Of a stretch of DNA of 64,000 nt, positions 1,023-41,898 are shown in pieces. Under the pieces are notes generated by a model that was not told the DNA's origin, did no database searches, and was given only the letters and a program-made list of their open reading frames with translations. The first letter of the stretch is position 1; each line of letters opens with the position of its first letter. The stretch lies in the IMG/VR virus record IMGVR_UViG_3300020154_000003, positions 124,001 through 188,000 of that record, one strand, 5' to 3'. Made by a program: the position numbers and the translations under genes.

Positions 1023-1403
1023 ATGAAAAAAGAACTGTAGATTTCCAATCCTAGCGATCTTAAACTGGTAACCATTACCAGACAAGACCTACCAATGGGC
1101 GCAATCATTGCCCAAACAGTACATTCAACAGCATCATTTGCCATCCAGTACCCTGACAAATTTCGTCATTGGGAACAAACATCAAACTACGTAGCGTGTC
1201 TAGCTGCAAAGGATGAGCAAGAACTACTCAAGTATTACGACCGATTAATAAAGGCAGGAGCCGATGTGGTATTATTCCGTGAACCCGACATGGATAACCA
1301 AGCAACATCCCTATGCTTTTACGGCACTCCTGAGTTTCGGAAAATTACAAGCAGTTTACCATTAATGTTCAAGCAGAAGAAGGAGGTGGCTATGGCAGCA
1401 TAA
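1023..1403 (+). CDS. peptidyl-tRNA hydrolase 2 (Pth2)-fold protein with in-frame TAG at codon 6 (1038-1040)
   Basis: From ATG 1023 reads MKKEL*ISNPSDLKLVTITRQDLPMGAIIAQTVH...FREPDMDNQATSLC. The Pth2 N-terminal strand (KLVxxxRxDL...AQxxH) lies upstream of the ORF-track start at 1095 and in frame with it. Confidence 0.75.
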
Positions 1404-1585: not shown

Positions 1586-1658
1586 GAGAGTATGGCTCAG
1601 TGGTTAGAGCAAGGACTTCTAAACTCCTAGGTCGTGGGTTCGAATCCCACTACTCTCT
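1586..1658 (+). tRNA. amber suppressor tRNA (anticodon CTA at 1619-1621)
   Basis: Acceptor GAGAGTA/TACTCTC, D stem GCTC/GAGC, anticodon stem AGGAC/CTCCT (C.C mismatch at 31-39) with loop TTCTAAA, variable loop AGGTC, T arm GTGGG-TTCGAAT-CCCAC. Confidence 0.8.
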
Positions 1659-1677
1659 CTCAATAAAATAAAAAGTT

Positions 1678-2664: not shown

Positions 2665-2700
2665 ATGAAAAACTTATAGAGTATCTCGCGACCACCATAA
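2665..2700 (+). promoter_or_regulatory. putative leader peptide MKNL(TAG)SISRPP(TAA) followed by structured leader
   Basis: ATG AAA AAC TTA TAG AGT ATC TCG CGA CCA CCA TAA; hairpins at 2708-2722, 2723-2750 and 2778-2793. Confidence 0.55.
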
Positions 2701-2809
2701 TTGGGTTATACCGAATCGGTATTATAGTTCCGAAATCAGAAAAAACTATACCAACTTAGTATAATAAATTTAAAAACAGGCAGTATAATGCCTACAAAGA
2801 AAAACAATT

Positions 2810-3268
2810 ATGGAAAATACAATAGAAAAAAGACACATTAACGTGAAGGATGTAAATTATGAATTGATCATCACAACATTGAATCAAATCAAAACTTTCG
2901 TCAAGGAAAACAACTATCAATTCAAAGATGAGAAGGGGTTTGATGAGATCACAAAGGAGAACTTTGAAAAAGCTTGGAATGACTTGAGCAAGAAAAAAAG
3001 AAAGAAATTAGCGTCATACATTTGGGCAGTCACCAATCACCCAACTTTCGCTAAGGTGAATAAATTCTTGCACTTCTTGATGAAGCATTTCATGCATTCA
3101 GATACCAGAATTCGTGTAATCAAATCAGAAAAGGAAATCGCCATTCAAGAAAAACGAAAAATGTATAAGGAAGCTTTAGCGAAAGCGAAGGCAGCTTATG
3201 GAGCATATAAATTAGAGAAGGGCGACTTCTATAAAATAAGATTAGCTAAAAATCAGGGAGTTCAATAA
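2810..3268 (+). CDS. hypothetical basic helical protein downstream of the amber leader
   Basis: 152-aa ORF with an A-rich start context. Confidence 0.75.
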   Translation: MENTIEKRHINVKDVNYELIITTLNQIKTFVKENNYQFKDEKGFDEITKENFEKAWNDLSKKKRKKLASYIWAVTNHPTFAKVNKFLHFLMKHFMHSDTRIRVIKSEKEIAIQEKRKMYKEALAKAKAAYGAYKLEKGDFYKIRLAKNQGVQ

Positions 3269-3915
3269 TGAAAACAAAGGATTTTATAAAAATGCTACAG
3301 GAAGCAGACCCCACAGGTGAAGGCTATATACGCCTCCCTGATGGGGGTGCCCCGTGGTTCGCAGAACAGAAGCCCGGATATTGGGATGGGCCTTATCAGT
3401 ACTTGGAAAAAATTAACCCGGAACAACATGACCATGCAGGGAATTTCAAATTGATTACTTCAACCAAAGGTTATAAGGTGGACATCCATTGTATGGATTT
3501 TTCAAGTATTGTTTGGGATGAAGACGGTGACATGGAAGAGATCAAGAAGCGTATTGCGTTTGATTATGCTGGCTATGGCCCGGACATTAGATCAGAGAAA
3601 GAAGAGCGATGCTGGAAAACAATTGAAGACGAAGCTAAATATGCACGGAACTTACACGAAAAGTCGCTCATTGAATGGACTGATCGTGTCATACGTGATT
3701 ACGTTGACTGTGGATATGAGATACGCCAGCCGTTGGATAAACCTATTGGCTATTATCATTGCATGACTGCACATACTCTATTCACTAAAAAAGTGTTCTG
3801 TCAGGGTGAATGTATGGCCGTTATAATGAGTGGTAAATTTTATCCTGAAAAGGGAGAAAAACATTACGTCTGGAAATACGACCCGGAAAGGGGTAAAGAC
3901 TGGTCTATTCGTTGA
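3268..3915 (+). CDS. hypothetical protein
   Basis: 215-aa ORF coupled to the previous gene (TAATG). Confidence 0.75.
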   Translation: MKTKDFIKMLQEADPTGEGYIRLPDGGAPWFAEQKPGYWDGPYQYLEKINPEQHDHAGNFKLITSTKGYKVDIHCMDFSSIVWDEDGDMEEIKKRIAFDYAGYGPDIRSEKEERCWKTIEDEAKYARNLHEKSLIEWTDRVIRDYVDCGYEIRQPLDKPIGYYHCMTAHTLFTKKVFCQGECMAVIMSGKFYPEKGEKHYVWKYDPERGKDWSIR

Positions 3916-10503: not shown

Positions 10504-11379
10504 ATGACACTAATATTAGACCTCACCAAAGGAGTCACCGAAACCACAGCATACAAAGCATGGAAATTTCCGGGTGGCGAAATTCACTTCAAGTTCTCAG
10601 ATGAATTTATACGTTGGCTAAATTCTCACAGATCGCTCGAAATTCAGACCAGAATAAACACCTCAGATGATTTTCTGTTTTTACTTCTAGTAATTGATAC
10701 GTTGAAGAAGGATTATCAGAATCACACCATCGATGTTTTCATCCCTTATATGCTTTACCAGCAAGCAGATAGAGATTTCAGTGTTGGCGAATGTTTTAGT
10801 CTCAGAACTGTAACCAAAATTCTGAATGCCATTGGTGTAAATTCATACACGATTTACGATCCCCACTCAGATGTTACTCCAGCTTTACTTCAGAACTGTA
10901 AGGTTATCGACAATAGCGATTACATCAAATGGGTGCTTGAGCAACTACCTTCATTAGGTAAATATTCCAATGGATTCAACGTTGTTATGCTTTCCCCCGA
11001 TGCTGGTGCATATAAGAAAATCTATAAACTCGCCAATAAAATTCAATTCAAGGGTGAGGTTGCGTCAGCCAATAAATCTCGTTCGATTTCAACTGGAAAT
11101 ATAGACTCATTGGAACTGTCGAAACATGATTTCGAAGGTAAGGATGTGTTGATTGTTGATGACATCTGTATCGGTGGTAGAACCTTTATTGAACTAGCAA
11201 AGAAGTTGAAGGAACGGAATGTTGGTGATTTATATCTCGCAATTTCTCACGGCATTTTTAGTAACGGATATGATGAACTAAGTCTCTACTACAAAAAGGT
11301 ATTCACTACTAACAGTAGAAAAAATGAATACAATCACGAATTAATTTCAACCTTTAACATTTTTGGCGATAATGACTGA
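10504..11379 (+). CDS. ribose-phosphate pyrophosphokinase-like protein (candidate NARP1 Adps)
   Basis: FPGGEIH, PYMLYQQADR, DPHSDV, SPDAGA, IVDDICIGGRTF, HGIFS. Confidence 0.88.
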   Translation: MTLILDLTKGVTETTAYKAWKFPGGEIHFKFSDEFIRWLNSHRSLEIQTRINTSDDFLFLLLVIDTLKKDYQNHTIDVFIPYMLYQQADRDFSVGECFSLRTVTKILNAIGVNSYTIYDPHSDVTPALLQNCKVIDNSDYIKWVLEQLPSLGKYSNGFNVVMLSPDAGAYKKIYKLANKIQFKGEVASANKSRSISTGNIDSLELSKHDFEGKDVLIVDDICIGGRTFIELAKKLKERNVGDLYLAISHGIFSNGYDELSLYYKKVFTTNSRKNEYNHELISTFNIFGDND

Positions 11380-11791: not shown

Positions 11792-12213
11792 TAGTATTTG
11801 TGGCGACTCCATTTTGGAGTTTTGATAAAGAAGTGTCTGAACGAAGAACTGCGATAATAAGCAAGTATTGCGGGCAATTATTGCGTGAGGGTATTATGTG
11901 TACTTCGCCAGTTGTTTTTGGAGTAACTATACTGAAATATACTGACCTACCGGGAAATTTTGCCTTTTGGGATAAACTTAGTTTTACCACTTTGGCAGCT
12001 TCAGATGTGCTACACGTACTTATGCTCCCCGGATGGGATGAATCGAGAGGCGTTAGTGAGGAAATAAAATTCGCACTAGAAAGAAAAATACCAATAAAAT
12101 ATTTTGATGTTTCCGAAGATAGATATGGCAGTCCCACTTTCAAAGAAAATAGCAGATCAATAGCTATTGGCAACCTAATAAGAAAAATTAATCATAAAAA
12201 AAATAACCCATGA
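11788..12213 (+). CDS. DUF1937 / nucleoside 2-deoxyribosyltransferase-like protein
   Basis: VATPF...SPV...FW...LMLPGWDESRGVSEEIKFA. Confidence 0.7.
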   Translation: MIVFVATPFWSFDKEVSERRTAIISKYCGQLLREGIMCTSPVVFGVTILKYTDLPGNFAFWDKLSFTTLAASDVLHVLMLPGWDESRGVSEEIKFALERKIPIKYFDVSEDRYGSPTFKENSRSIAIGNLIRKINHKKNNP

Positions 12214-13781
12214 AAATGAATCCATTTTTAATGGCTGACTTTTACAAGATCGGTCACCCATTTCAATACCCCAAAGGTACAAATCTTGTTTATGCTAACT
12301 TAACACCACGTAATTCCAGAATCAAGGGAGTTGACAAGATGGTGTTCTTTGGCCTTCAATATTTTATCAAGCATTACTTGATTAAGTATTTCAACGAAAA
12401 CTTCTTCGATCTTCCGAAAGACGAAGTGATGAATTCATACAGAAGAAGAATTCTCACCTCATTAGGTTCCGATCTACCTTATTATGATCACATTGCAAAT
12501 CTTCACGATTTGGGTTATCTCCCAATCGAGATTAAAGCTTTGCCAGAAGGAAGCAAGGTGAAGATGCGTGTGCCAGTACTGACTGTCAAAAATACACACC
12601 CTGAATTTTATTGGTTGACCAATTTCATAGAAACAATCATGTCCGATATTGTGTGGCAACCATGTACCTCCGCTACTATTGCCCACGAATACCGTAAACT
12701 TCTCAACAAGTTTGGTGAAGAAACTGGTATGCACCCCGACTTTATTCAATGGCAAGGTCACGACTTCAGCTTTAGAGGTATGAGTTCCTTCGAGAGTGCA
12801 TATACTTCAGCTATGGGGCACTTATTATCTTTTACTGGCACTGACACCATTCCGGGGATTGATGCTCTTGAAACGTATTACAATGCTAATGCGGATTACG
12901 AATTAATTGGTGGTAGTGTCAATGCTACCGAACACAGTGTTATGTGTGCTGGTGAAAAGGATTCAGAGTACGAGACTTACAGACGTTTGATCTGTGATGT
13001 ATACCCTAAAGGCATCGTATCAATTGTTTCAGATACTTGGGATTTATGGTTCGTACTAACTCAGATCATACCTCAATTGAAAGAAGCGATTCTCAATAGG
13101 GAAGGTAAGGTTGTTATTCGTCCTGACAGTGGCGATCCTGTTAAAATTCTTACAGGTTACTTCAAGAACGAATTGACTGTGATCGATGGCAAATATTACC
13201 GTAACACTGATGTTGATGCTCATGATATTGACGCAACTAAGCTAACGCTTAAAGCAGGTGCCAAAGAAGTTGGTGAAGCTGAAAGAAAAGGTGTTATTGA
13301 GGTTCTTTGGGACGTGTTTGGTGGAACCATCACTGACAAAGGTTACAAACTACTGGACGAACATATTGGGGCAATTTACGGTGACAGTATCACACTTACT
13401 CGTGCAGAAGAAATTTGTCAGCGATTGAAAGATAAGGGATTTGCTTCACAAGTTGTACTTGGTATCGGTAGCTACACTTATCAGTACAACACCAGAGATA
13501 CCTTTGGTACTGCAATGAAGTCTACCTATGTTGAAGTTAACGGTGAAGGAAGAGAAATTTTCAAATCTCCTGCGACTGATGATGGAACTAAAAAATCTGC
13601 CAGAGGCTTGCTGAAAGTTGTGAAAGATGAGGACGGTGAATTCGTACTTGTAGATCAGGTGTCTTGGGAAGAAGAGGCTGAGGGAGAATTAACACCAGTC
13701 TTTAAGGATGGTAAGTTACTTGTTGACCAGTCATTGAGCGAAATAAGGGCAAGATTGAGTGAAGTAGTAGAGGTAGTATAA
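12210..13781 (+). CDS. nicotinamide phosphoribosyltransferase-like protein (candidate NARP1 Namat)
   Basis: ADFYKIGH..QYP, HDFSFRG, ATEHSVM, SIVSDTWD, IRPDSGDP, IYGDSIT, K.P.TD.G.KKSARG. Confidence 0.92.
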   Translation: MKMNPFLMADFYKIGHPFQYPKGTNLVYANLTPRNSRIKGVDKMVFFGLQYFIKHYLIKYFNENFFDLPKDEVMNSYRRRILTSLGSDLPYYDHIANLHDLGYLPIEIKALPEGSKVKMRVPVLTVKNTHPEFYWLTNFIETIMSDIVWQPCTSATIAHEYRKLLNKFGEETGMHPDFIQWQGHDFSFRGMSSFESAYTSAMGHLLSFTGTDTIPGIDALETYYNANADYELIGGSVNATEHSVMCAGEKDSEYETYRRLICDVYPKGIVSIVSDTWDLWFVLTQIIPQLKEAILNREGKVVIRPDSGDPVKILTGYFKNELTVIDGKYYRNTDVDAHDIDATKLTLKAGAKEVGEAERKGVIEVLWDVFGGTITDKGYKLLDEHIGAIYGDSITLTRAEEICQRLKDKGFASQVVLGIGSYTYQYNTRDTFGTAMKSTYVEVNGEGREIFKSPATDDGTKKSARGLLKVVKDEDGEFVLVDQVSWEEEAEGELTPVFKDGKLLVDQSLSEIRARLSEVVEVV

Positions 13782-14933: not shown

Positions 14934-15552
14934 AATATCATACATATTAATACTCTTATTAGTAATATTAACTTCCTTTAATTCAAAACCAGCAACTGGT
15001 TGTCTCGAACTCGATTTAATTCTCATCGGGGATTACTCGTCCAGTTTAAGGGGTCAAGAACATTATTTTGTAGGTGCATGTAGAACATTCGTTAAGAAAT
15101 TTCAATTATCTGAACAAACAATCAAAATTGGTATAGTAACCTTTAATGATACTGCAAAACTAATCAGTCCTTTAAGTAGTGATACTTCCTTTATCACTAG
15201 CAGAATTAATGAGTTGGCTGAAGAAATAGGTGAAGATTGGACTAATATGGAGAAAGGATTATTCGTGGCTTTTAATGAGTTCACAAATAACGGCAGACCA
15301 AATGCACAGAAAATGATTATAATCCTTTCTGACGGTGCAGTCAACGATCCGGGCGATAAAACTTCAGCACCCATAACTACGATGGAAATTATTCAACAAC
15401 TTAGAATGACTGGTATGGGTGTGTGTAGCATCTTAATTAAGAGCGGTGAAGAGGAACCAGAATTCATGAAAGCGATTTCATCAGGATGTTACGCAGAATC
15501 TAGCTACGAAAATCTAGCAATCGAATTGGCTAAATTAGATGTTTGTCTCTAA
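14923..15552 (+). CDS. exported vWA domain protein
   Basis: N-terminal signal-like hydrophobic segment; DYSSS, TNM, LSDG. Confidence 0.8.
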   Translation: MKNKISYILILLLVILTSFNSKPATGCLELDLILIGDYSSSLRGQEHYFVGACRTFVKKFQLSEQTIKIGIVTFNDTAKLISPLSSDTSFITSRINELAEEIGEDWTNMEKGLFVAFNEFTNNGRPNAQKMIIILSDGAVNDPGDKTSAPITTMEIIQQLRMTGMGVCSILIKSGEEEPEFMKAISSGCYAESSYENLAIELAKLDVCL

Positions 15553-16153
15553 AAAAAATGTGTGGAAGCCAGCTTCTCTGGATGTGATGCGTCAAATTGC
15601 AAACGCTGAGAAAGATTGGGCATCCTTACTGAAATCGGAGAACACATATAAAAAATTTTTCAAGAAATTGCTTTTTTGGCGTAAACCAAAAACACAATTC
15701 GAAGGAGTTACGTTTCCGGTAGTAAGAAAAGTCTTTGCTAATTTGATGGCTAACGATATTGTTGGAGTACAACCAATGGCAGCACCATCCAATGGTCTTT
15801 ATGCGAATTACATCACAATAACATTCAAACTTGGGAAACCAATTAAGCATAAAATTGTTGGAAAGACACCCGGAGAATATTTAATAAATTTAATACATGC
15901 TTGGAATAGTTTGCCTGATCGATTTGTGAAAGAGGACATTGTTGGTTACTATCACTATAAACTCGCGGCACTGCTTAAGGTTTATCCTACCATCCTCGAT
16001 GAGTATGAAACTGACGATTACACAAAAGATTTGATGTTTGTATTGGAAGGACAGAAGCCCAAACATAAATTTGAAGGTTACAAACCGATACCCCAAATTT
16101 TAAATGGTAATGATGGACATATACCGTTATGGCCTATTCCAAATAAAATATAG
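15539..16153 (+). CDS. protein containing a T4 gp23 major-capsid (Gol-region)-like segment
   Basis: FPVVRKVFANLMANDIVGVQPMAAPSNG. Confidence 0.65.
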   Translation: MFVSKKNVWKPASLDVMRQIANAEKDWASLLKSENTYKKFFKKLLFWRKPKTQFEGVTFPVVRKVFANLMANDIVGVQPMAAPSNGLYANYITITFKLGKPIKHKIVGKTPGEYLINLIHAWNSLPDRFVKEDIVGYYHYKLAALLKVYPTILDEYETDDYTKDLMFVLEGQKPKHKFEGYKPIPQILNGNDGHIPLWPIPNKI

Positions 16154-17657: not shown

Positions 17658-18044
17658 ATGGAACCAGCTAAGAATCTCTTGATATTACTTTTGGCAATGG
17701 GCGTATTTACCGCCCTTTGCTGTTTATTGGGGGAAATTATTTTCCGTTACTTGAAACGGTTAGGTCAAAAGCATATGATGACATATGCCGAATACATCCC
17801 TGACTGTACTATCGGTGAAAGGGACGATAATAGATTTTTTGTCGTTTCTGGAGTGATTCGTAAGGATGGAATATTCCACTCTGGATGGTTTGTCTATGAT
17901 AGAGAACTTAAAAAATATGTTGACGTTGATTTTTCAACCACGGATCATCCTCTCGGTGTAGCAAAAGATCGTGCAGGTCTTCTCAATCATGCCAGCAGTA
18001 ATCAACCATACAATAAAGTCGTTTGGGATTTTATACAAAACTAG
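17658..18044 (+). CDS. membrane-anchored hypothetical protein
   Basis: N-terminal TM segment; ends in TAG. Confidence 0.6.
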   Translation: MEPAKNLLILLLAMGVFTALCCLLGEIIFRYLKRLGQKHMMTYAEYIPDCTIGERDDNRFFVVSGVIRKDGIFHSGWFVYDRELKKYVDVDFSTTDHPLGVAKDRAGLLNHASSNQPYNKVVWDFIQN

Positions 18045-41259: not shown

Positions 41260-41898
41260 CTAATTATTATGACCCCATTCACCGTCCCAATTCGGATTGA
41301 TGTGGGAGTTCTTTTTATCTGCGATCATTCGGTCGATGAAAAGTTTCTGTCCGGGATTCAATCCCTTGATGTCAACGCGACCGTTTTTAAATGCTTTCAC
41401 TGAAATCTTTTGAACTAGTTCACCTTTCTCATCCAGAATGTGAATATCCTTCAGGTCGTTACCTGCTGCCCGGAATTCTTTTGCAATGTCAGCAGCGATG
41501 GTAAAATCCGGGTCTTGTTTCTTCAGGATCACAAAGCGAAGGAAACCAAACAGGTTTGTATCCGCATAGTGAATGTCTGAGATGGTATAATGGTCGCCAG
41601 ACTTTCTGAAGTAATAGTGCCAAAACAGGCTGTTATTGTTCGCATACGCGAGAAACAGATTTTTGTTTCCATCGTAATTTTTCTTCAGCCACTGGTCGAA
41701 CCTGTCAGCATTCCACTGAAAAGATTTCGTAAAATCGAACAGGGAGCGACCAAAGAACCTGCTTTCCCTCGGATAATATCCGATATACGTGCTCACTTTG
41801 TTTTCTGTGATTGCTTTCACAGTATCCATCAGGGCATCCTCATCCAATAGATCAAGATTATCGGAGATGTACTTGAGTCTTTTCTGAATTGTATCCAT
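41260..41898 (-). CDS. hypothetical protein
   Basis: 212-aa ORF with its own promoter; VKAFKNGRVDIK. Confidence 0.7.
   Translation of the reverse strand: MDTIQKRLKYISDNLDLLDEDALMDTVKAITENKVSTYIGYYPRESRFFGRSLFDFTKSFQWNADRFDQWLKKNYDGNKNLFLAYANNNSLFWHYYFRKSGDHYTISDIHYADTNLFGFLRFVILKKQDPDFTIAADIAKEFRAAGNDLKDIHILDEKGELVQKISVKAFKNGRVDIKGLNPGQKLFIDRMIADKKNSHINPNWDGEWGHNN

Follow-up and report, generated by a model that had tools for sequence, protein, structure and literature searches.

The RAPP/RAGP-type arrest peptides SecM, ApcA, ApdA, and ApdP (PMC7897499, PMC10951233, PMC10987492, PMC12992588) are more than 100 residues long, lie upstream of the gene that they control, and carry a C-terminal core of Arg, a small residue, and Pro by the peptidyl-transferase centre (PTC). 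Mutagenesis of this R-x-P motif in ApdA and ApdP shows that P, G, A, S, and D are permissive at x, with Pro being partly or fully so (PMC12992588), and Thr, Asp, and Val rank among the best A-site residues other than Pro for arrest (PMC12992588, PMC7897499). The Arg is reported to be irreplaceable in ApdA, ApdP, and SecM, and a Pro codon is required in the A site (PMC12992588). In the ErmCL/ErmBL, MifM-yidC2, and SecM-secA systems, a ribosome paused on a short upstream open reading frame (uORF) melts a helix that hides the initiation region, and in TnaC and PepNL (PMC11890864) the nascent peptide hinders the release factor at the uORF stop. Phage suppressor tRNAs are common, and their targets are often unknown; the authors describing XacN1 found none (PMC5852040).

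The locus described here lies in a 64,000-nucleotide stretch of virus record IMGVR_UViG_3300020154_000003 (the window), with all of the features below on its + strand, and is likely a suppression-dependent translational switch consisting of a very short arrest-peptide leader and a helix that sequesters the start codon of the following gene. There is no experimental evidence of any kind for this switch, which weighs against it. The leader is a uORF at 2665..2700 with the codons ATG AAA AAC TTA TAG AGT ATC TCG CGA CCA CCA TAA, giving MKNL-stop-SISRPP-stop by direct reading, 11 codons in all and without a hydrophobic segment. Its start codon (2665-2667) is followed by an internal amber codon, the 'gate', at 2677..2679 (TAG, then A at +4) and by an arrest-like tail at 2689..2700, in which Arg-Pro-Pro (CGA CCA CCA, with CGA at 2689-2691 and the last CCA at 2695-2697) precedes the terminal TAA (2698-2700). 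The strict pattern ATG-x(0-6)-TAG-x(1-10)-[RK]PP-stop has a single match, at 2665, on both strands of the 64 kb window.

Leaders of this type are conserved upstream of homologues of the gene at 2810..3268 (gene X). We compared 96 non-redundant loci encoding gene X homologues, all of them metagenomic and with 73 distinct leader sequences among them, a leader being defined as a short ORF 40-180 nt upstream of gene X with M-x(1-5), an internal stop, x(1-6), and [R/K]-x-P-(P/T)-stop. Such a mini-ORF is present in 82/96 loci, and the other 14 are mostly contig-edge truncations or close variants (e.g., IRSPV..). Truncated contigs and close variants together cover all of the leaderless loci except one. 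The strict pattern occurs upstream of gene X in 48/83 regions and a loose pattern in 76/83, with means of 0.0 (strict) and 0.22 (loose) in dinucleotide shuffles of the 83 regions; over 464 kb of related loci, 74 matches to the pattern fall in the leader position and 4 fall elsewhere. It is kept where the neighbouring protein has 30-65% identity, and an 84%-identical relative reads MKNL-stop-IISRPP-stop, in which ATC and TCG downstream of the TAG have changed synonymously to ATT and TCA. All of the distinct leaders (73/73) have the internal stop, at codon 3-7 and following a pre-TAG part of 2-6 codons, and the other leader codons diverge freely. The base at +4 of this stop is A in 58/73 leaders and G in 13/73 (purine in 71/73); a purine after the stop favours suppression according to the E. 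coli suppression literature. The terminal stops of the distinct leaders are TAA (63), TGA (8), and TAG (2), such that 71/73 do not end in TAG. The leader uORF is not a chance ORF, and its pattern is far beyond chance expectation.

By analogy, and without stalling data, the tail residues (x, and the P, T, D, and V that come after the Pro) match the published R-x-P arrest rules. Among the distinct leaders the tails are KPP (25), RPP (22), RGP (5), RGPT (4), RYPP (4), RSP (2), and RDP (2), with rarer forms being RHPP (2), RNPP (2), RAPT (2), RAPP (1), RAPD (1), and REPP (1). Arg is at -2 or -3 from the last Pro in 48/73 distinct leaders, including that of the window, and Lys takes its place (K-P-P-stop) in 25/73; only 12/73 leaders have the canonical register of the R-x-P-P classes. 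TAA follows R-P-P in the window, so the requirement for a Pro codon in the A site is not met, and in the alternative register, x-R-P with an A-site Pro, the Arg is one position off its place in the motif. The motif is better described as R/K-x-P with a stop (or Thr, Asp, or Val) in the A site, with RPP-stop being one version. A preliminary description of the locus, made from the sequence alone, had read the uORF as MKNL (stop at TAG) or as MKNL-X-SISRPP (stop at TAA 2698), which holds exactly. It had further suggested a search for a conserved M-x(3-5)-TAG-x(3)-RPP-stop upstream of homologues of the gene at 2810, and this does recover a conserved leader, with a broader motif; the R-x-P-P motif that it invoked is too narrow, and the RPP-stop tail itself fits the R-x-P rules.

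The presumed reader of the internal TAG is a suppressor tRNA with anticodon CUA at 1586..1659 (identified by ARAGORN; 67 bits with Rfam tRNA), and a second tRNA(CUA) copy lies ~2 kb further upstream in the source contig (L001). Within the fetched flanks, 61/96 loci have a tRNA(CUA), which in most cases either follows gene X by 14-150 nt or immediately precedes the leader. Also in this region is a PTH2-like peptidyl-tRNA hydrolase gene at 1023..1403, which has an in-frame TAG at codon 6 (1038-1040; MKKEL-TAG-ISNPSDLKLVTITRQD...), and whose post-TAG piece matches Pfam PTH2 (E = 2e-7). PTH2-like genes are upstream of gene X on the same strand in 69/96 loci; an ATG lies no more than 8 codons before the in-frame TAG in 65/67 distinct PTH2-like N-termini, only 12 of which offer a further start codon after the TAG and ahead of the conserved core. 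The type of internal stop covaries with the neighbouring suppressor tRNA, as judged from the switch in one genome (L052/L114) that has a tRNA(UUA), an internal TAA in both the leader and the PTH2-like gene, and a terminal TAG. Megaphage L020 has no leader, and its gene X starts ~10-20 nt after the stop of an amber-gated PTH2-like gene, which we infer to be a different route to the same dependence on suppression.

Convincing in-frame TAGs are found in the window only at 1038, 1753, and 2677, the two or three TAG-bearing genes all adjoin the tRNA, and reading TAG as sense does not alter the longest ORFs. Ten of the 111 crude window ORFs still end in TAG, so suppression has side effects, which counts against the switch. 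Genome-wide TAG recoding is not supported by ORF lengths in the window, which covers 64 of ~366 kb. Identification of the amino acid carried by the suppressor from acceptor-stem and discriminator positions was dropped; the ARAGORN boundaries are inconsistent and the tRNAs are heterogeneous.

Gene X is an intact ORF of 152 aa, lysine-rich and mostly helical (AlphaFold2 model with pLDDT of 92), and belongs to a family of 338 clusters at 50% identity with an invariant C-terminal motif, YKxEKGDFYK. Two Foldseek searches gave no match among PDB or BFVD folds, there is nothing in Pfam above cut-off, PHROGs, or PADLOC, and no named or structural relative was found in the ESM Atlas or in profile searches of 5.8 + 1.8 billion proteins. 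A protein search of INPHARED matched no cultured phage and one unannotated 636-kb metagenomic phage, and the longer family members have no informative fusion domain. At the DNA level, the whole window matches no known phage by megablast, and sensitive blastn finds only tRNAs. The product is soluble-looking and uncharacterised, and there is no Sec/YidC-type gene downstream of the leader. We infer that gene X is the gene regulated by the leader, although there are no expression data; its function is unassigned, so the biological logic cannot be closed. A 215-aa ORF at 3268..3915, whose ATG overlaps the gene X TAA by one base, is likely translationally coupled to gene X, and the same arrangement is seen in one other locus (L002); it is kept in only 15/96 loci and is therefore not a core part of the module.

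The RNA part of the element is a long-range helix between the end of the uORF and the start of gene X. Its anti-start arm, CCATAATTG at 2695..2703, runs from the last Pro codon through the TAA stop to 3 nt beyond it, and is 100% complementary to the start arm, CAATTATGG at 2805..2813, which contains the gene X ATG (2810-2812). This perfect 9-bp helix is present in both the minimum-free-energy and centroid folds and is the dominant element in the fold of the intergenic RNA (2642-2815), which is at -30 kcal/mol (z = -3.5), with 1/200 shuffles being as stable. When 16 sequences are aligned, 93% of the helix cells are paired with compensatory changes at 3 pairs, and the covariation score is 0.175 versus 0.071 in shuffles (0/500 as high); slid registers are 18-42% paired. 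The arms also prefer their own partners to permuted ones (z = -10.6; 0/5000 permutations as low), and examples of compensatory arm pairs across the family are CCATAATTG/CAATTATGG, CCATAACTG/CAGTTATGG, TTCCATTTT/AAAATGGAA, and CCATGAT/ATCATGG. The duplex is significant in 60/81 leaders; no significant anti-start pairing was found in the range searched for the other 21/81, mostly of the RGPT and RAPP classes, and it is possible that the RNA part differs in these or that the model is incomplete. Relative to the terminal stop the arm starts at -6 to +8 nt, and relative to the internal stop it starts 15-28 nt downstream. In modelling across the family, opening the start region costs 5.4 kcal/mol when the mRNA is free, 6.5 when a ribosome occupies the internal stop, and 1.0 when one occupies the terminal stop (5.4, 6.1 at TAG, and 1.1 at TAA for the window); the modelled cost falls by at least 2 kcal in 64/79 loci and rises in 0/79. 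Conservation of the parts, covariation, and geometry are thus shown.

Enclosed by this helix are three inverted repeats, ATACCGA/TCGGTAT (2708-2722), TATAGTT/AACTATA (2723-2750, with arms at 2723-2729 and 2744-2750), and AGGCA/TGCCT (2778-2793, with arms at 2778-2782 and 2789-2793), within an A/T-rich, C-poor spacer between the uORF and gene X. The first of these loses two pairs in the 84%-identical relative, and the same position in other loci has stable but unrelated hairpins, with no homology between subfamilies. The long-range anti-start:start helix is likely the functional RNA element, and the hairpins are inserts that it closes; because the helix pairs with the start codon, the design points to translational control and not to transcription attenuation. 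The window leader has no Rfam cis-regulatory match at E <= 1, and five related loci have none at gathering score. A hammerhead-like CTGATGAG in two leaders (L083 and L123) was rejected, having no Rfam match.

These results revise the RNA part of the preliminary description. The inverted repeats of the three hairpins that it placed after the uORF are present, but their role as a functional RNA element is not upheld, and its TTGG/CCAA closing helix fails, being absent from the minimum-free-energy and centroid folds. It had looked to covarying hairpins; covariation is found in the long-range helix, which it missed, and hairpin 1 is not conserved. Its attenuator with alternative hairpins is corrected to translational control via the long-range helix, and its core idea, that only readthrough ribosomes reach a stall site, remodel the leader, and report suppressor/release factor 1 (RF1) status, is supported by the comparative evidence.

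In the proposed switch, translation would begin at the ATG at 2665 and, without suppression, RF1 would terminate it at the UAG at 2677. A ribosome there is predicted to cover the mRNA to ~2688 only, so that helix 2695-2703/2805-2813 would stay closed with the gene X AUG buried; the phage genes lack a Shine-Dalgarno sequence, and so initiation depends on an unstructured start region. When tRNA(CUA) reads the UAG, the ribosome would reach Arg-Pro-Pro with UAA in the A site, and the R-x-P nascent chain may slow peptide release at this terminal stop. The paused ribosome on the anti-start arm would hold the helix open, so that gene X can be started by other ribosomes or by the same one after release, as probably could the overlapping next ORF. 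Gene X output would then reflect how active the suppressor tRNA is relative to RF1, and the PTH2-like gene would be tied to the same signal more simply, through the in-frame TAG at its own codon 6. UAG readthrough, ribosome stalling, and the turning on (rather than off) of gene X are all inferred.

We note several points against the arrest model. K-P-P is present in one third of the leaders despite the Arg being regarded as 'irreplaceable', and in the R-[YNH]-P-P leaders x is not among the residues shown to be permissive. The nascent chains are just 7-12 residues, shorter than the characterised RAPP peptides, and arrest with a release factor rather than Pro-tRNA in the A site is inferred, the motif being unproven in that setting.

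Two alternatives survive best, although we consider both to be unlikely. The first is tna-like transcription attenuation, in which a ribosome stalled at the terminal stop would block Rho loading or a terminator hairpin and transcription would run into gene X and often a tRNA(CUA) gene, with release at the UAG exposing the RNA and ending transcription. TnaC also ends in Pro-stop and works in this way (references in PMC6412442), and a synthetic amber-in-leader switch built on TnaC is functional (Liu et al. 2011, cited in PMC6412442); stable hairpins are always present between the uORF and gene X, and the tRNA(CUA) gene is often 3' of gene X, so transcriptional feedback would make sense. However, no T-run is seen 3' of any of the window hairpins, the A/T-rich, C-poor spacer is a poor Rho loading site, and the covarying element is a pairing with the gene X AUG that a transcriptional mechanism does not need. 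It is possible that transcriptional and translational mechanisms co-exist.

The second, for which the case is similarly weak, invokes amber gating and termination-reinitiation coupling without any true arrest. Here the helix would bring the uORF stop beside the gene X AUG, the terminating ribosome would melt the helix and restart, and the Pro-Pro tail would be minor or set mainly by RNA pairing. Leaders of the window class have their final Pro codon and stop within the helix (CCA TAA / TTA TGG), so the RNA constrains those codons; this Pro codon is CCA in 16/18 of them and varies in leaders whose arm is located 3' of the stop. Gene X has no Shine-Dalgarno sequence even where the uORF has one (the short-class uORFs have a strong AAGGAGG in 28/35 loci and gene X never does), and in L020 gene X seems to be simply coupled to the PTH2-like gene. 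Against this, [K/R]-P-P is invariant in the short class although the anti-start arm lies 2-8 nt 3' of the stop and the Pro codons vary freely, which shows that selection acts on the peptide. In no class does the long-range helix include the first Pro or the Arg/Lys, and the range of tails (RGP, RSP, RDP, RAPT, RGPT, and RAPP) obeys arrest-peptide rules and no RNA rule.

Much less likely is a minigene or decoy, in which ATG-x(1-5)-TAG alone would do the work, acting like lambda bar by releasing short peptidyl-tRNAs or by occupying RF1, and the post-TAG frame would be incidental. Lambda bar minigenes are prone to drop-off, and the pre-TAG part of the leaders is in their size range; a minigene would also explain the neighbouring peptidyl-tRNA hydrolase gene that is linked in so many of the loci. 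However, the post-TAG frame, the R/K-x-P tail, the non-TAG terminal stop, and the geometry to the helix are all conserved, and in the PTH2-like gene this gate is in frame with a genuine enzyme domain, which implies that its readthrough is intended. The idea that the ORF and hairpins arose by chance in an A/T-rich spacer serving only as a promoter site can be virtually ruled out: there are TATAAT-like hexamers at 2760 and 2784, AGTATAAT is present twice in the spacer, AATTTAAAAAC is repeated at 2640 and 2767, and short A/T-rich complementarities are common, but the pattern persists at 30-65% protein identity with essentially none in shuffles, the helix covaries, and with 73 distinct leaders the loci are not assembly artefacts of one sequence. 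As to promoters, AGTATAAT and AATTTAAAAAC are not enriched in the window, and a scan for consensus promoters and terminators was at background level.

We thus favour the suppression-dependent translational switch, and the module supplies concrete conserved suppressor targets in the form of a stop-gated hydrolase gene and a leader through which readthrough would lead to the translation of another gene. Should the mechanism prove correct, the leader would be a natural nonsense-suppression sensor made from an arrest peptide of 7-12 residues, R-x-P arrest would extend to termination complexes and very short chains, and the timing and control of phage code changes would be directly testable with simple reporters. 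It would also provide a compact, portable synthetic-biology part that reads out the efficiency of amber suppression without a TAG in the reporter. The gene X family, which is unannotated, and the PTH2-like family are likely players in phage manipulation of translation termination. A bolder reading, which we advance tentatively and lean slightly against, is that many large phages carry a self-monitoring 'genetic-code switch' made up of gene X, its amber-gated arrest leader, the suppressor tRNA, and the PTH2-like hydrolase with its own amber gate. In this switch the leader would gauge suppressor versus RF1 activity in real time and gene X, as a new fold, would be an effector acting back on termination or suppression and giving feedback control of the code change. 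Antagonising RF1, handling the suppressor tRNA, and rescuing ribosomes are possible examples of such a role, and if this reading is true the leader would be the first natural regulatory element with codon meaning as its input.

No description of such a leader was found in the literature searched, and the closest systems each share only some of its features. Like the RAPP/RAGP-type arrest peptides, the phage leaders have the Arg-small residue-Pro core and lie upstream of the controlled gene, and those of one class (L051 and L062) are literally R-A-P-P. In contrast, the phage peptides are only 7-12 residues, lack a signal or membrane segment, are not linked to a Sec/YidC gene, mostly have a stop rather than a Pro codon in the A site, and in one third of cases have Lys for Arg; the internal-stop gate has no counterpart in the known family. 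The locus meets the criterion for Erm/MifM/SecM-type switches that the initiation region be base-paired with one arm under the predicted footprint of the paused ribosome. However, the phage helix hides the AUG itself in a context without a Shine-Dalgarno sequence, it is long-range (~100 nt) and closes around unrelated hairpins, and its input is inferred to be nonsense suppression rather than a drug or membrane-insertion activity. TnaC has a Pro-stop end as does the phage leader, but it needs free tryptophan and acts through Rho; the phage peptide is too short for upstream determinants like Trp12 and Asp16 and its spacer is C-poor, and the TnaC-type criteria are thus not met. PepNL also links arrest to readthrough, but there readthrough of the arrest stop relieves arrest, whereas in the phage leader readthrough of an earlier stop would be the precondition for arrest, the opposite logic.

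Recoded phages, including crAss-like phages and megaphages (Borges et al. preprint 10.1101/2021.08.26.457843), have a phage tRNA(CUA) and in-frame TAGs as here. Those phages have many TAGs in late and structural genes, whereas those of the window are in two or three genes by the tRNA, and gene X has no TAG and would be tied to suppression through its leader; the preprint does not mention a leader or a peptidyl-tRNA hydrolase. The synthetic amber-in-leader switch (Liu, Qi, Yanofsky and Arkin 2011, in PMC6412442) is an engineered equivalent with decoding of a leader stop as its input, but is man-made and transcriptional. The RF2 gene, prfB, also uses stop-codon decoding as a regulatory input, sensing RF2 by a +1 frameshift in its own gene without an arrest peptide or RNA switch. 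In the mammalian AMD1 C-tail (PMC13025110), as in the phage model, only readthrough ribosomes reach an arrest at the next in-frame stop, and both have an arginine in the PTC, which in the phage leader would likewise block termination. The AMD1 C-tail is a eukaryotic, 384-nt extension of a main ORF that depends on readthrough occurring spontaneously and is believed to act through queueing to repress the mRNA that carries it, whereas the phage leader is a dedicated uORF that would depend on a suppressor tRNA and is predicted to activate the downstream gene.

The leader upstream of gene X has an uORF at 2665-2700 that reads ATG AAA AAC TTA TAG AGT ATC TCG CGA CCA CCA TAA (MKNL-stop-SISRPP-stop), and gene X (2810-3268) follows directly after the leader region. 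This reading had been proposed in a preliminary description and is confirmed on the sequence, and the three short inverted repeats listed there after the uORF are all real. The list lacks the dominant element, however, a long-range helix in which an anti-start arm, CCATAATTG (2695-2703, the last Pro codon, TAA, and three more bases), is perfectly complementary to a start arm, CAATTATGG (2805-2813), containing the gene X ATG. This closing helix encloses the hairpins listed earlier and dominates the predicted fold of the spacer (2642-2815; -30 kcal/mol, z = -3.5 against dinucleotide shuffles).

The helix is supported by covariation across gene X relatives. When 34 nt around each uORF stop are paired with 20 nt around the gene X ATG, pairing is better than 95% of shuffles in 60 of 81 leaders (median z = -3.7), and own partners sum to -755 kcal/mol versus -571 ± 17 kcal/mol for partners from other loci (z = -10.6, with 0 of 5000 permutations as low). 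The start contexts covary with the arms (CAATTATGG/CCATAATTG, CAGTTATGG/CCATAACTG, AAAATGGAA/TTCCATTTT, and ATCATGG/CCATGAT), and an alignment of 16 sequences from the subfamily to which the window belongs has 93% of cells paired and double changes at three pairs, with a higher covariation score than any of 500 shuffles; slid registers pair at 18 to 42%. The last Pro codon is CCA in 16 of the 18 leaders whose arm covers it, and it varies freely in those whose arm follows the uORF stop.

The leader itself is also conserved. Collecting homologues of the gene X product (152 aa) among viral and metagenomic contigs yielded 130 loci, with 96 nonredundant upstream regions. Of these regions, 63 have the pattern ATG-x(1-5)-TAG-x(1-7)-Pro-Pro-stop, 76 to 183 nt before gene X; when the tail is relaxed to [R/K]-x?-P-x?-stop, a leader is present in 82. 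The strict and loose patterns occur in 48 and 76 of 83 regions, respectively, versus 0.0 and 0.22 in dinucleotide shuffles of the same regions, and 464 kb of loci contain 74 copies of the pattern in leaders and 4 in other places. A relative with 84% identity codes for MKNL-stop-IISRPP-stop, with synonymous changes after the TAG. Among the 14 regions without the loose pattern, eight are on contigs truncated within or too near the leader, and three read IRSPV and then continue without a stop. Also lacking it are two variants, one that has lost the stop after IRGPT (L130) and one with the leader in frame with gene X (L032), and a megaphage locus has no leader at all. In L032 (∼2900-2940), MKK-stop-TNIRGPDP reads in frame through to the ATG called as the start of gene X (GGACCTGATCCA ATG), and this could be either a fused variant or a wrongly called start. 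Two other leaders (L083 and L123) share a hairpin, GGTCACCTCACTGATGAGGCGACC, between the uORF and gene X that holds a hammerhead-like core, CTGATGAG, and an Rfam search of this hairpin returned no hammerhead or other family at threshold.

Relative to the terminal stop, the arm starts between -6 and +8 nt; relative to the internal stop, it starts 15 to 28 nt downstream. With a ribosome footprint masked from -15 to +11 of the A site, the modeled median cost of opening the gene X start region is 5.4 kcal/mol for free RNA; placing the ribosome at the internal stop gives 6.5, and placing it at the terminal stop gives 1.0 (5.4, 6.1, and 1.1 in the window); the cost falls by at least 2 kcal in 64 of 79 loci and rises in none. 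AAGGAGG accompanies the uORF in 28 of the 35 loci of the short-leader class, and gene X never has a Shine-Dalgarno (SD) sequence. We note that the 11-mer AATTTAAAAAC is exactly repeated, 14 nt 5' of the uORF ATG (2640-2650) and 32 nt 5' of the gene X ATG (2767-2777). It also occurs 6 nt before the ATG of a peptidyl-tRNA hydrolase-like (PTH2-like) gene at a related locus (L002, 5479-5489), and TTTAAAC-N9-ATG recurs before uORFs of the window's subfamily. The repeat is not enriched across the window, and a promoter or initiation role is only a possibility.

In 61 of 96 loci, the fetched flanks encode a suppressor tRNA(CUA), most often 14 to 150 nt 3' of gene X or just 5' of the leader; in the window it is at 1586-1659, ∼1.1 kb upstream of the leader, adjoining two tRNA-Ile genes. 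The sole pair of loci with a tRNA(UUA), L052/L114, has an ochre module (1666-1700, 2860-2886, and 3473-3547) of tRNA(UUA), TAA-gated PTH2-like gene, and TAA-gated leader, with TAG as the leader's terminal stop. Other leaders end in TAA (63) or TGA (8), with hardly any ending in TAG. The internal stop type thus matches the anticodon of the resident tRNA, and we infer that this tRNA reads it, although readthrough has not been demonstrated. A UUA anticodon may wobble onto UAG, and it would then be unexplained how the terminal TAG of L052/L114 remains a stop. Of 73 leaders, 58 have A and 13 have G immediately 3' of the internal stop, chiefly in the triplets ATT, ATA, or GTA. Leaders and hydrolase genes alike mostly place an Ile codon next to this stop (ATT 32/73, ATA 14/73). 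The window's tRNA cluster (1412-1659) comprises Ile(GAU), Ile(UAU), and Sup(CUA), and the Ile tRNAs could conceivably be connected with the readthrough context.

The tails of distinct leaders are KPP (25), RPP (22), RGP (5), RGPT (4), RYPP (4), RSP, RDP, RHPP, RNPP, and RAPT (2 each), and RAPP, RAPD, and REPP (1 each); any sense codon after the tail Pro is Pro, Thr, Asp, or Val. In systematic mutagenesis of ApdA/ApdP, Arg and Pro of R-A-P proved essential, and Gly was a full substitute for Ala, with Pro, Ser, Asp, or Glu a partial one; earlier selections on random libraries had yielded RxPP with x = G, A, S, or P (PMC12992588). Arrest by RAPP and RGPP occurs in differing N-terminal contexts and is EF-P resistant. 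The phage tails share the same small x residues as ApdA/ApdP, but unlike RAPP-type peptides, most have a stop codon in the A site, one-third have Lys for Arg, and the chains are only 7 to 12 residues long. The tails look like an arrest motif, and pausing at them is inferred.

We propose that termination at UAG would leave the gene X start codon buried, whereas suppression would take the ribosome to R-P-P/UAA, where release would be slow; the ribosome paused there would keep the helix open and permit translation of gene X, probably along with the overlapping ORF at 3268-3915. The data directly establish the anatomy, its conservation and covariation, and the agreement between stop and anticodon; the sign of this regulation, like the readthrough and the pause, is inferred. 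It is also possible that the same ribosome reinitiates at gene X, that the mRNA is cleaved in the A site at the pause, or that there is an additional Rho component, and present data do not separate any of these from the proposed mechanism.

Gene X has a confident structure model (pLDDT 92), but structure and sequence searches found no relative of known function, and its role is a matter of inference. The PTH2-like gene (1023-1403) has an in-frame TAG at codon 6 (1038-1040), and relatives conserve the stretch between this TAG and the next ATG; the gene can be annotated only with this TAG read through. It is upstream on the same strand in 69 of 96 loci, and 65 of 67 distinct PTH2-like N termini near gene X start ATG-x(0-7)-TAG, only 12 of the 65 having an alternative start before the conserved core. 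The first codons often echo the same genome's leader (e.g., MKDT-stop-I in both). From this linkage we conclude that suppressor tRNA, gated hydrolase, gated leader, and gene X constitute a conserved module. In the leaderless locus (L020, 2511-3414; 636-kb megaphage WNFQ01000001.1, also LR756504.1), gene X directly follows the amber-gated hydrolase gene, starting ∼10 to 20 nt past its stop, an arrangement suggesting that direct translational coupling may replace the leader.

The window belongs to a 366-kb phage contig (L001/L009, 100% identity), has 38% G+C, and uses the standard code, judging from ORF lengths. Its genes lack SD sequences (an SD-like 4-mer in 6 of 95 versus an 11.6% background) and have A-rich, G-poor upstream regions, a pattern typical of hosts such as Bacteroidota. 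The sole DNA matches to the tRNA region include Cellulophaga phages. An N6-adenine-methyltransferase-like gene (1678-2205) also has an in-frame TAG (1753-1755), with EPSAGFG (motif I) located shortly after it and before the first later start codon; the standard ORF call (1840-2205, TTG start) loses this motif. There is a single homologue of this gene among the fetched loci. Strong PHROG matches identify a ribose-phosphate pyrophosphokinase and a nicotinamide phosphoribosyltransferase (10504-11379 and 12210-13781), a phage-encoded NAD+ salvage pair. TAG ends 10 of 111 crude window ORFs (e.g., 15539-16153, 17658-18044, and 41260-41898), and an active suppressor would lengthen such ORFs by anything from a few codons to dozens.

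Full-text literature searches covering arrest peptides, suppressor tRNAs, phage recoding, and peptidyl-tRNA hydrolase turned up no account of this element, although coverage was partial and a prior description is possible; the main recoding survey mentions neither leader nor hydrolase, and Rfam has no family matching the leader. If the inferred mechanism is correct, this would be an arrest-leader switch whose input, nonsense suppression, is without natural precedent in that literature. Its parts resemble RAPP-type arrest peptides and switches of the Erm, MifM, and SecM type, and its logic is like that of the AMD1 readthrough-stall, inverts that of PepNL, and corresponds to that of a synthetic amber-in-leader switch.
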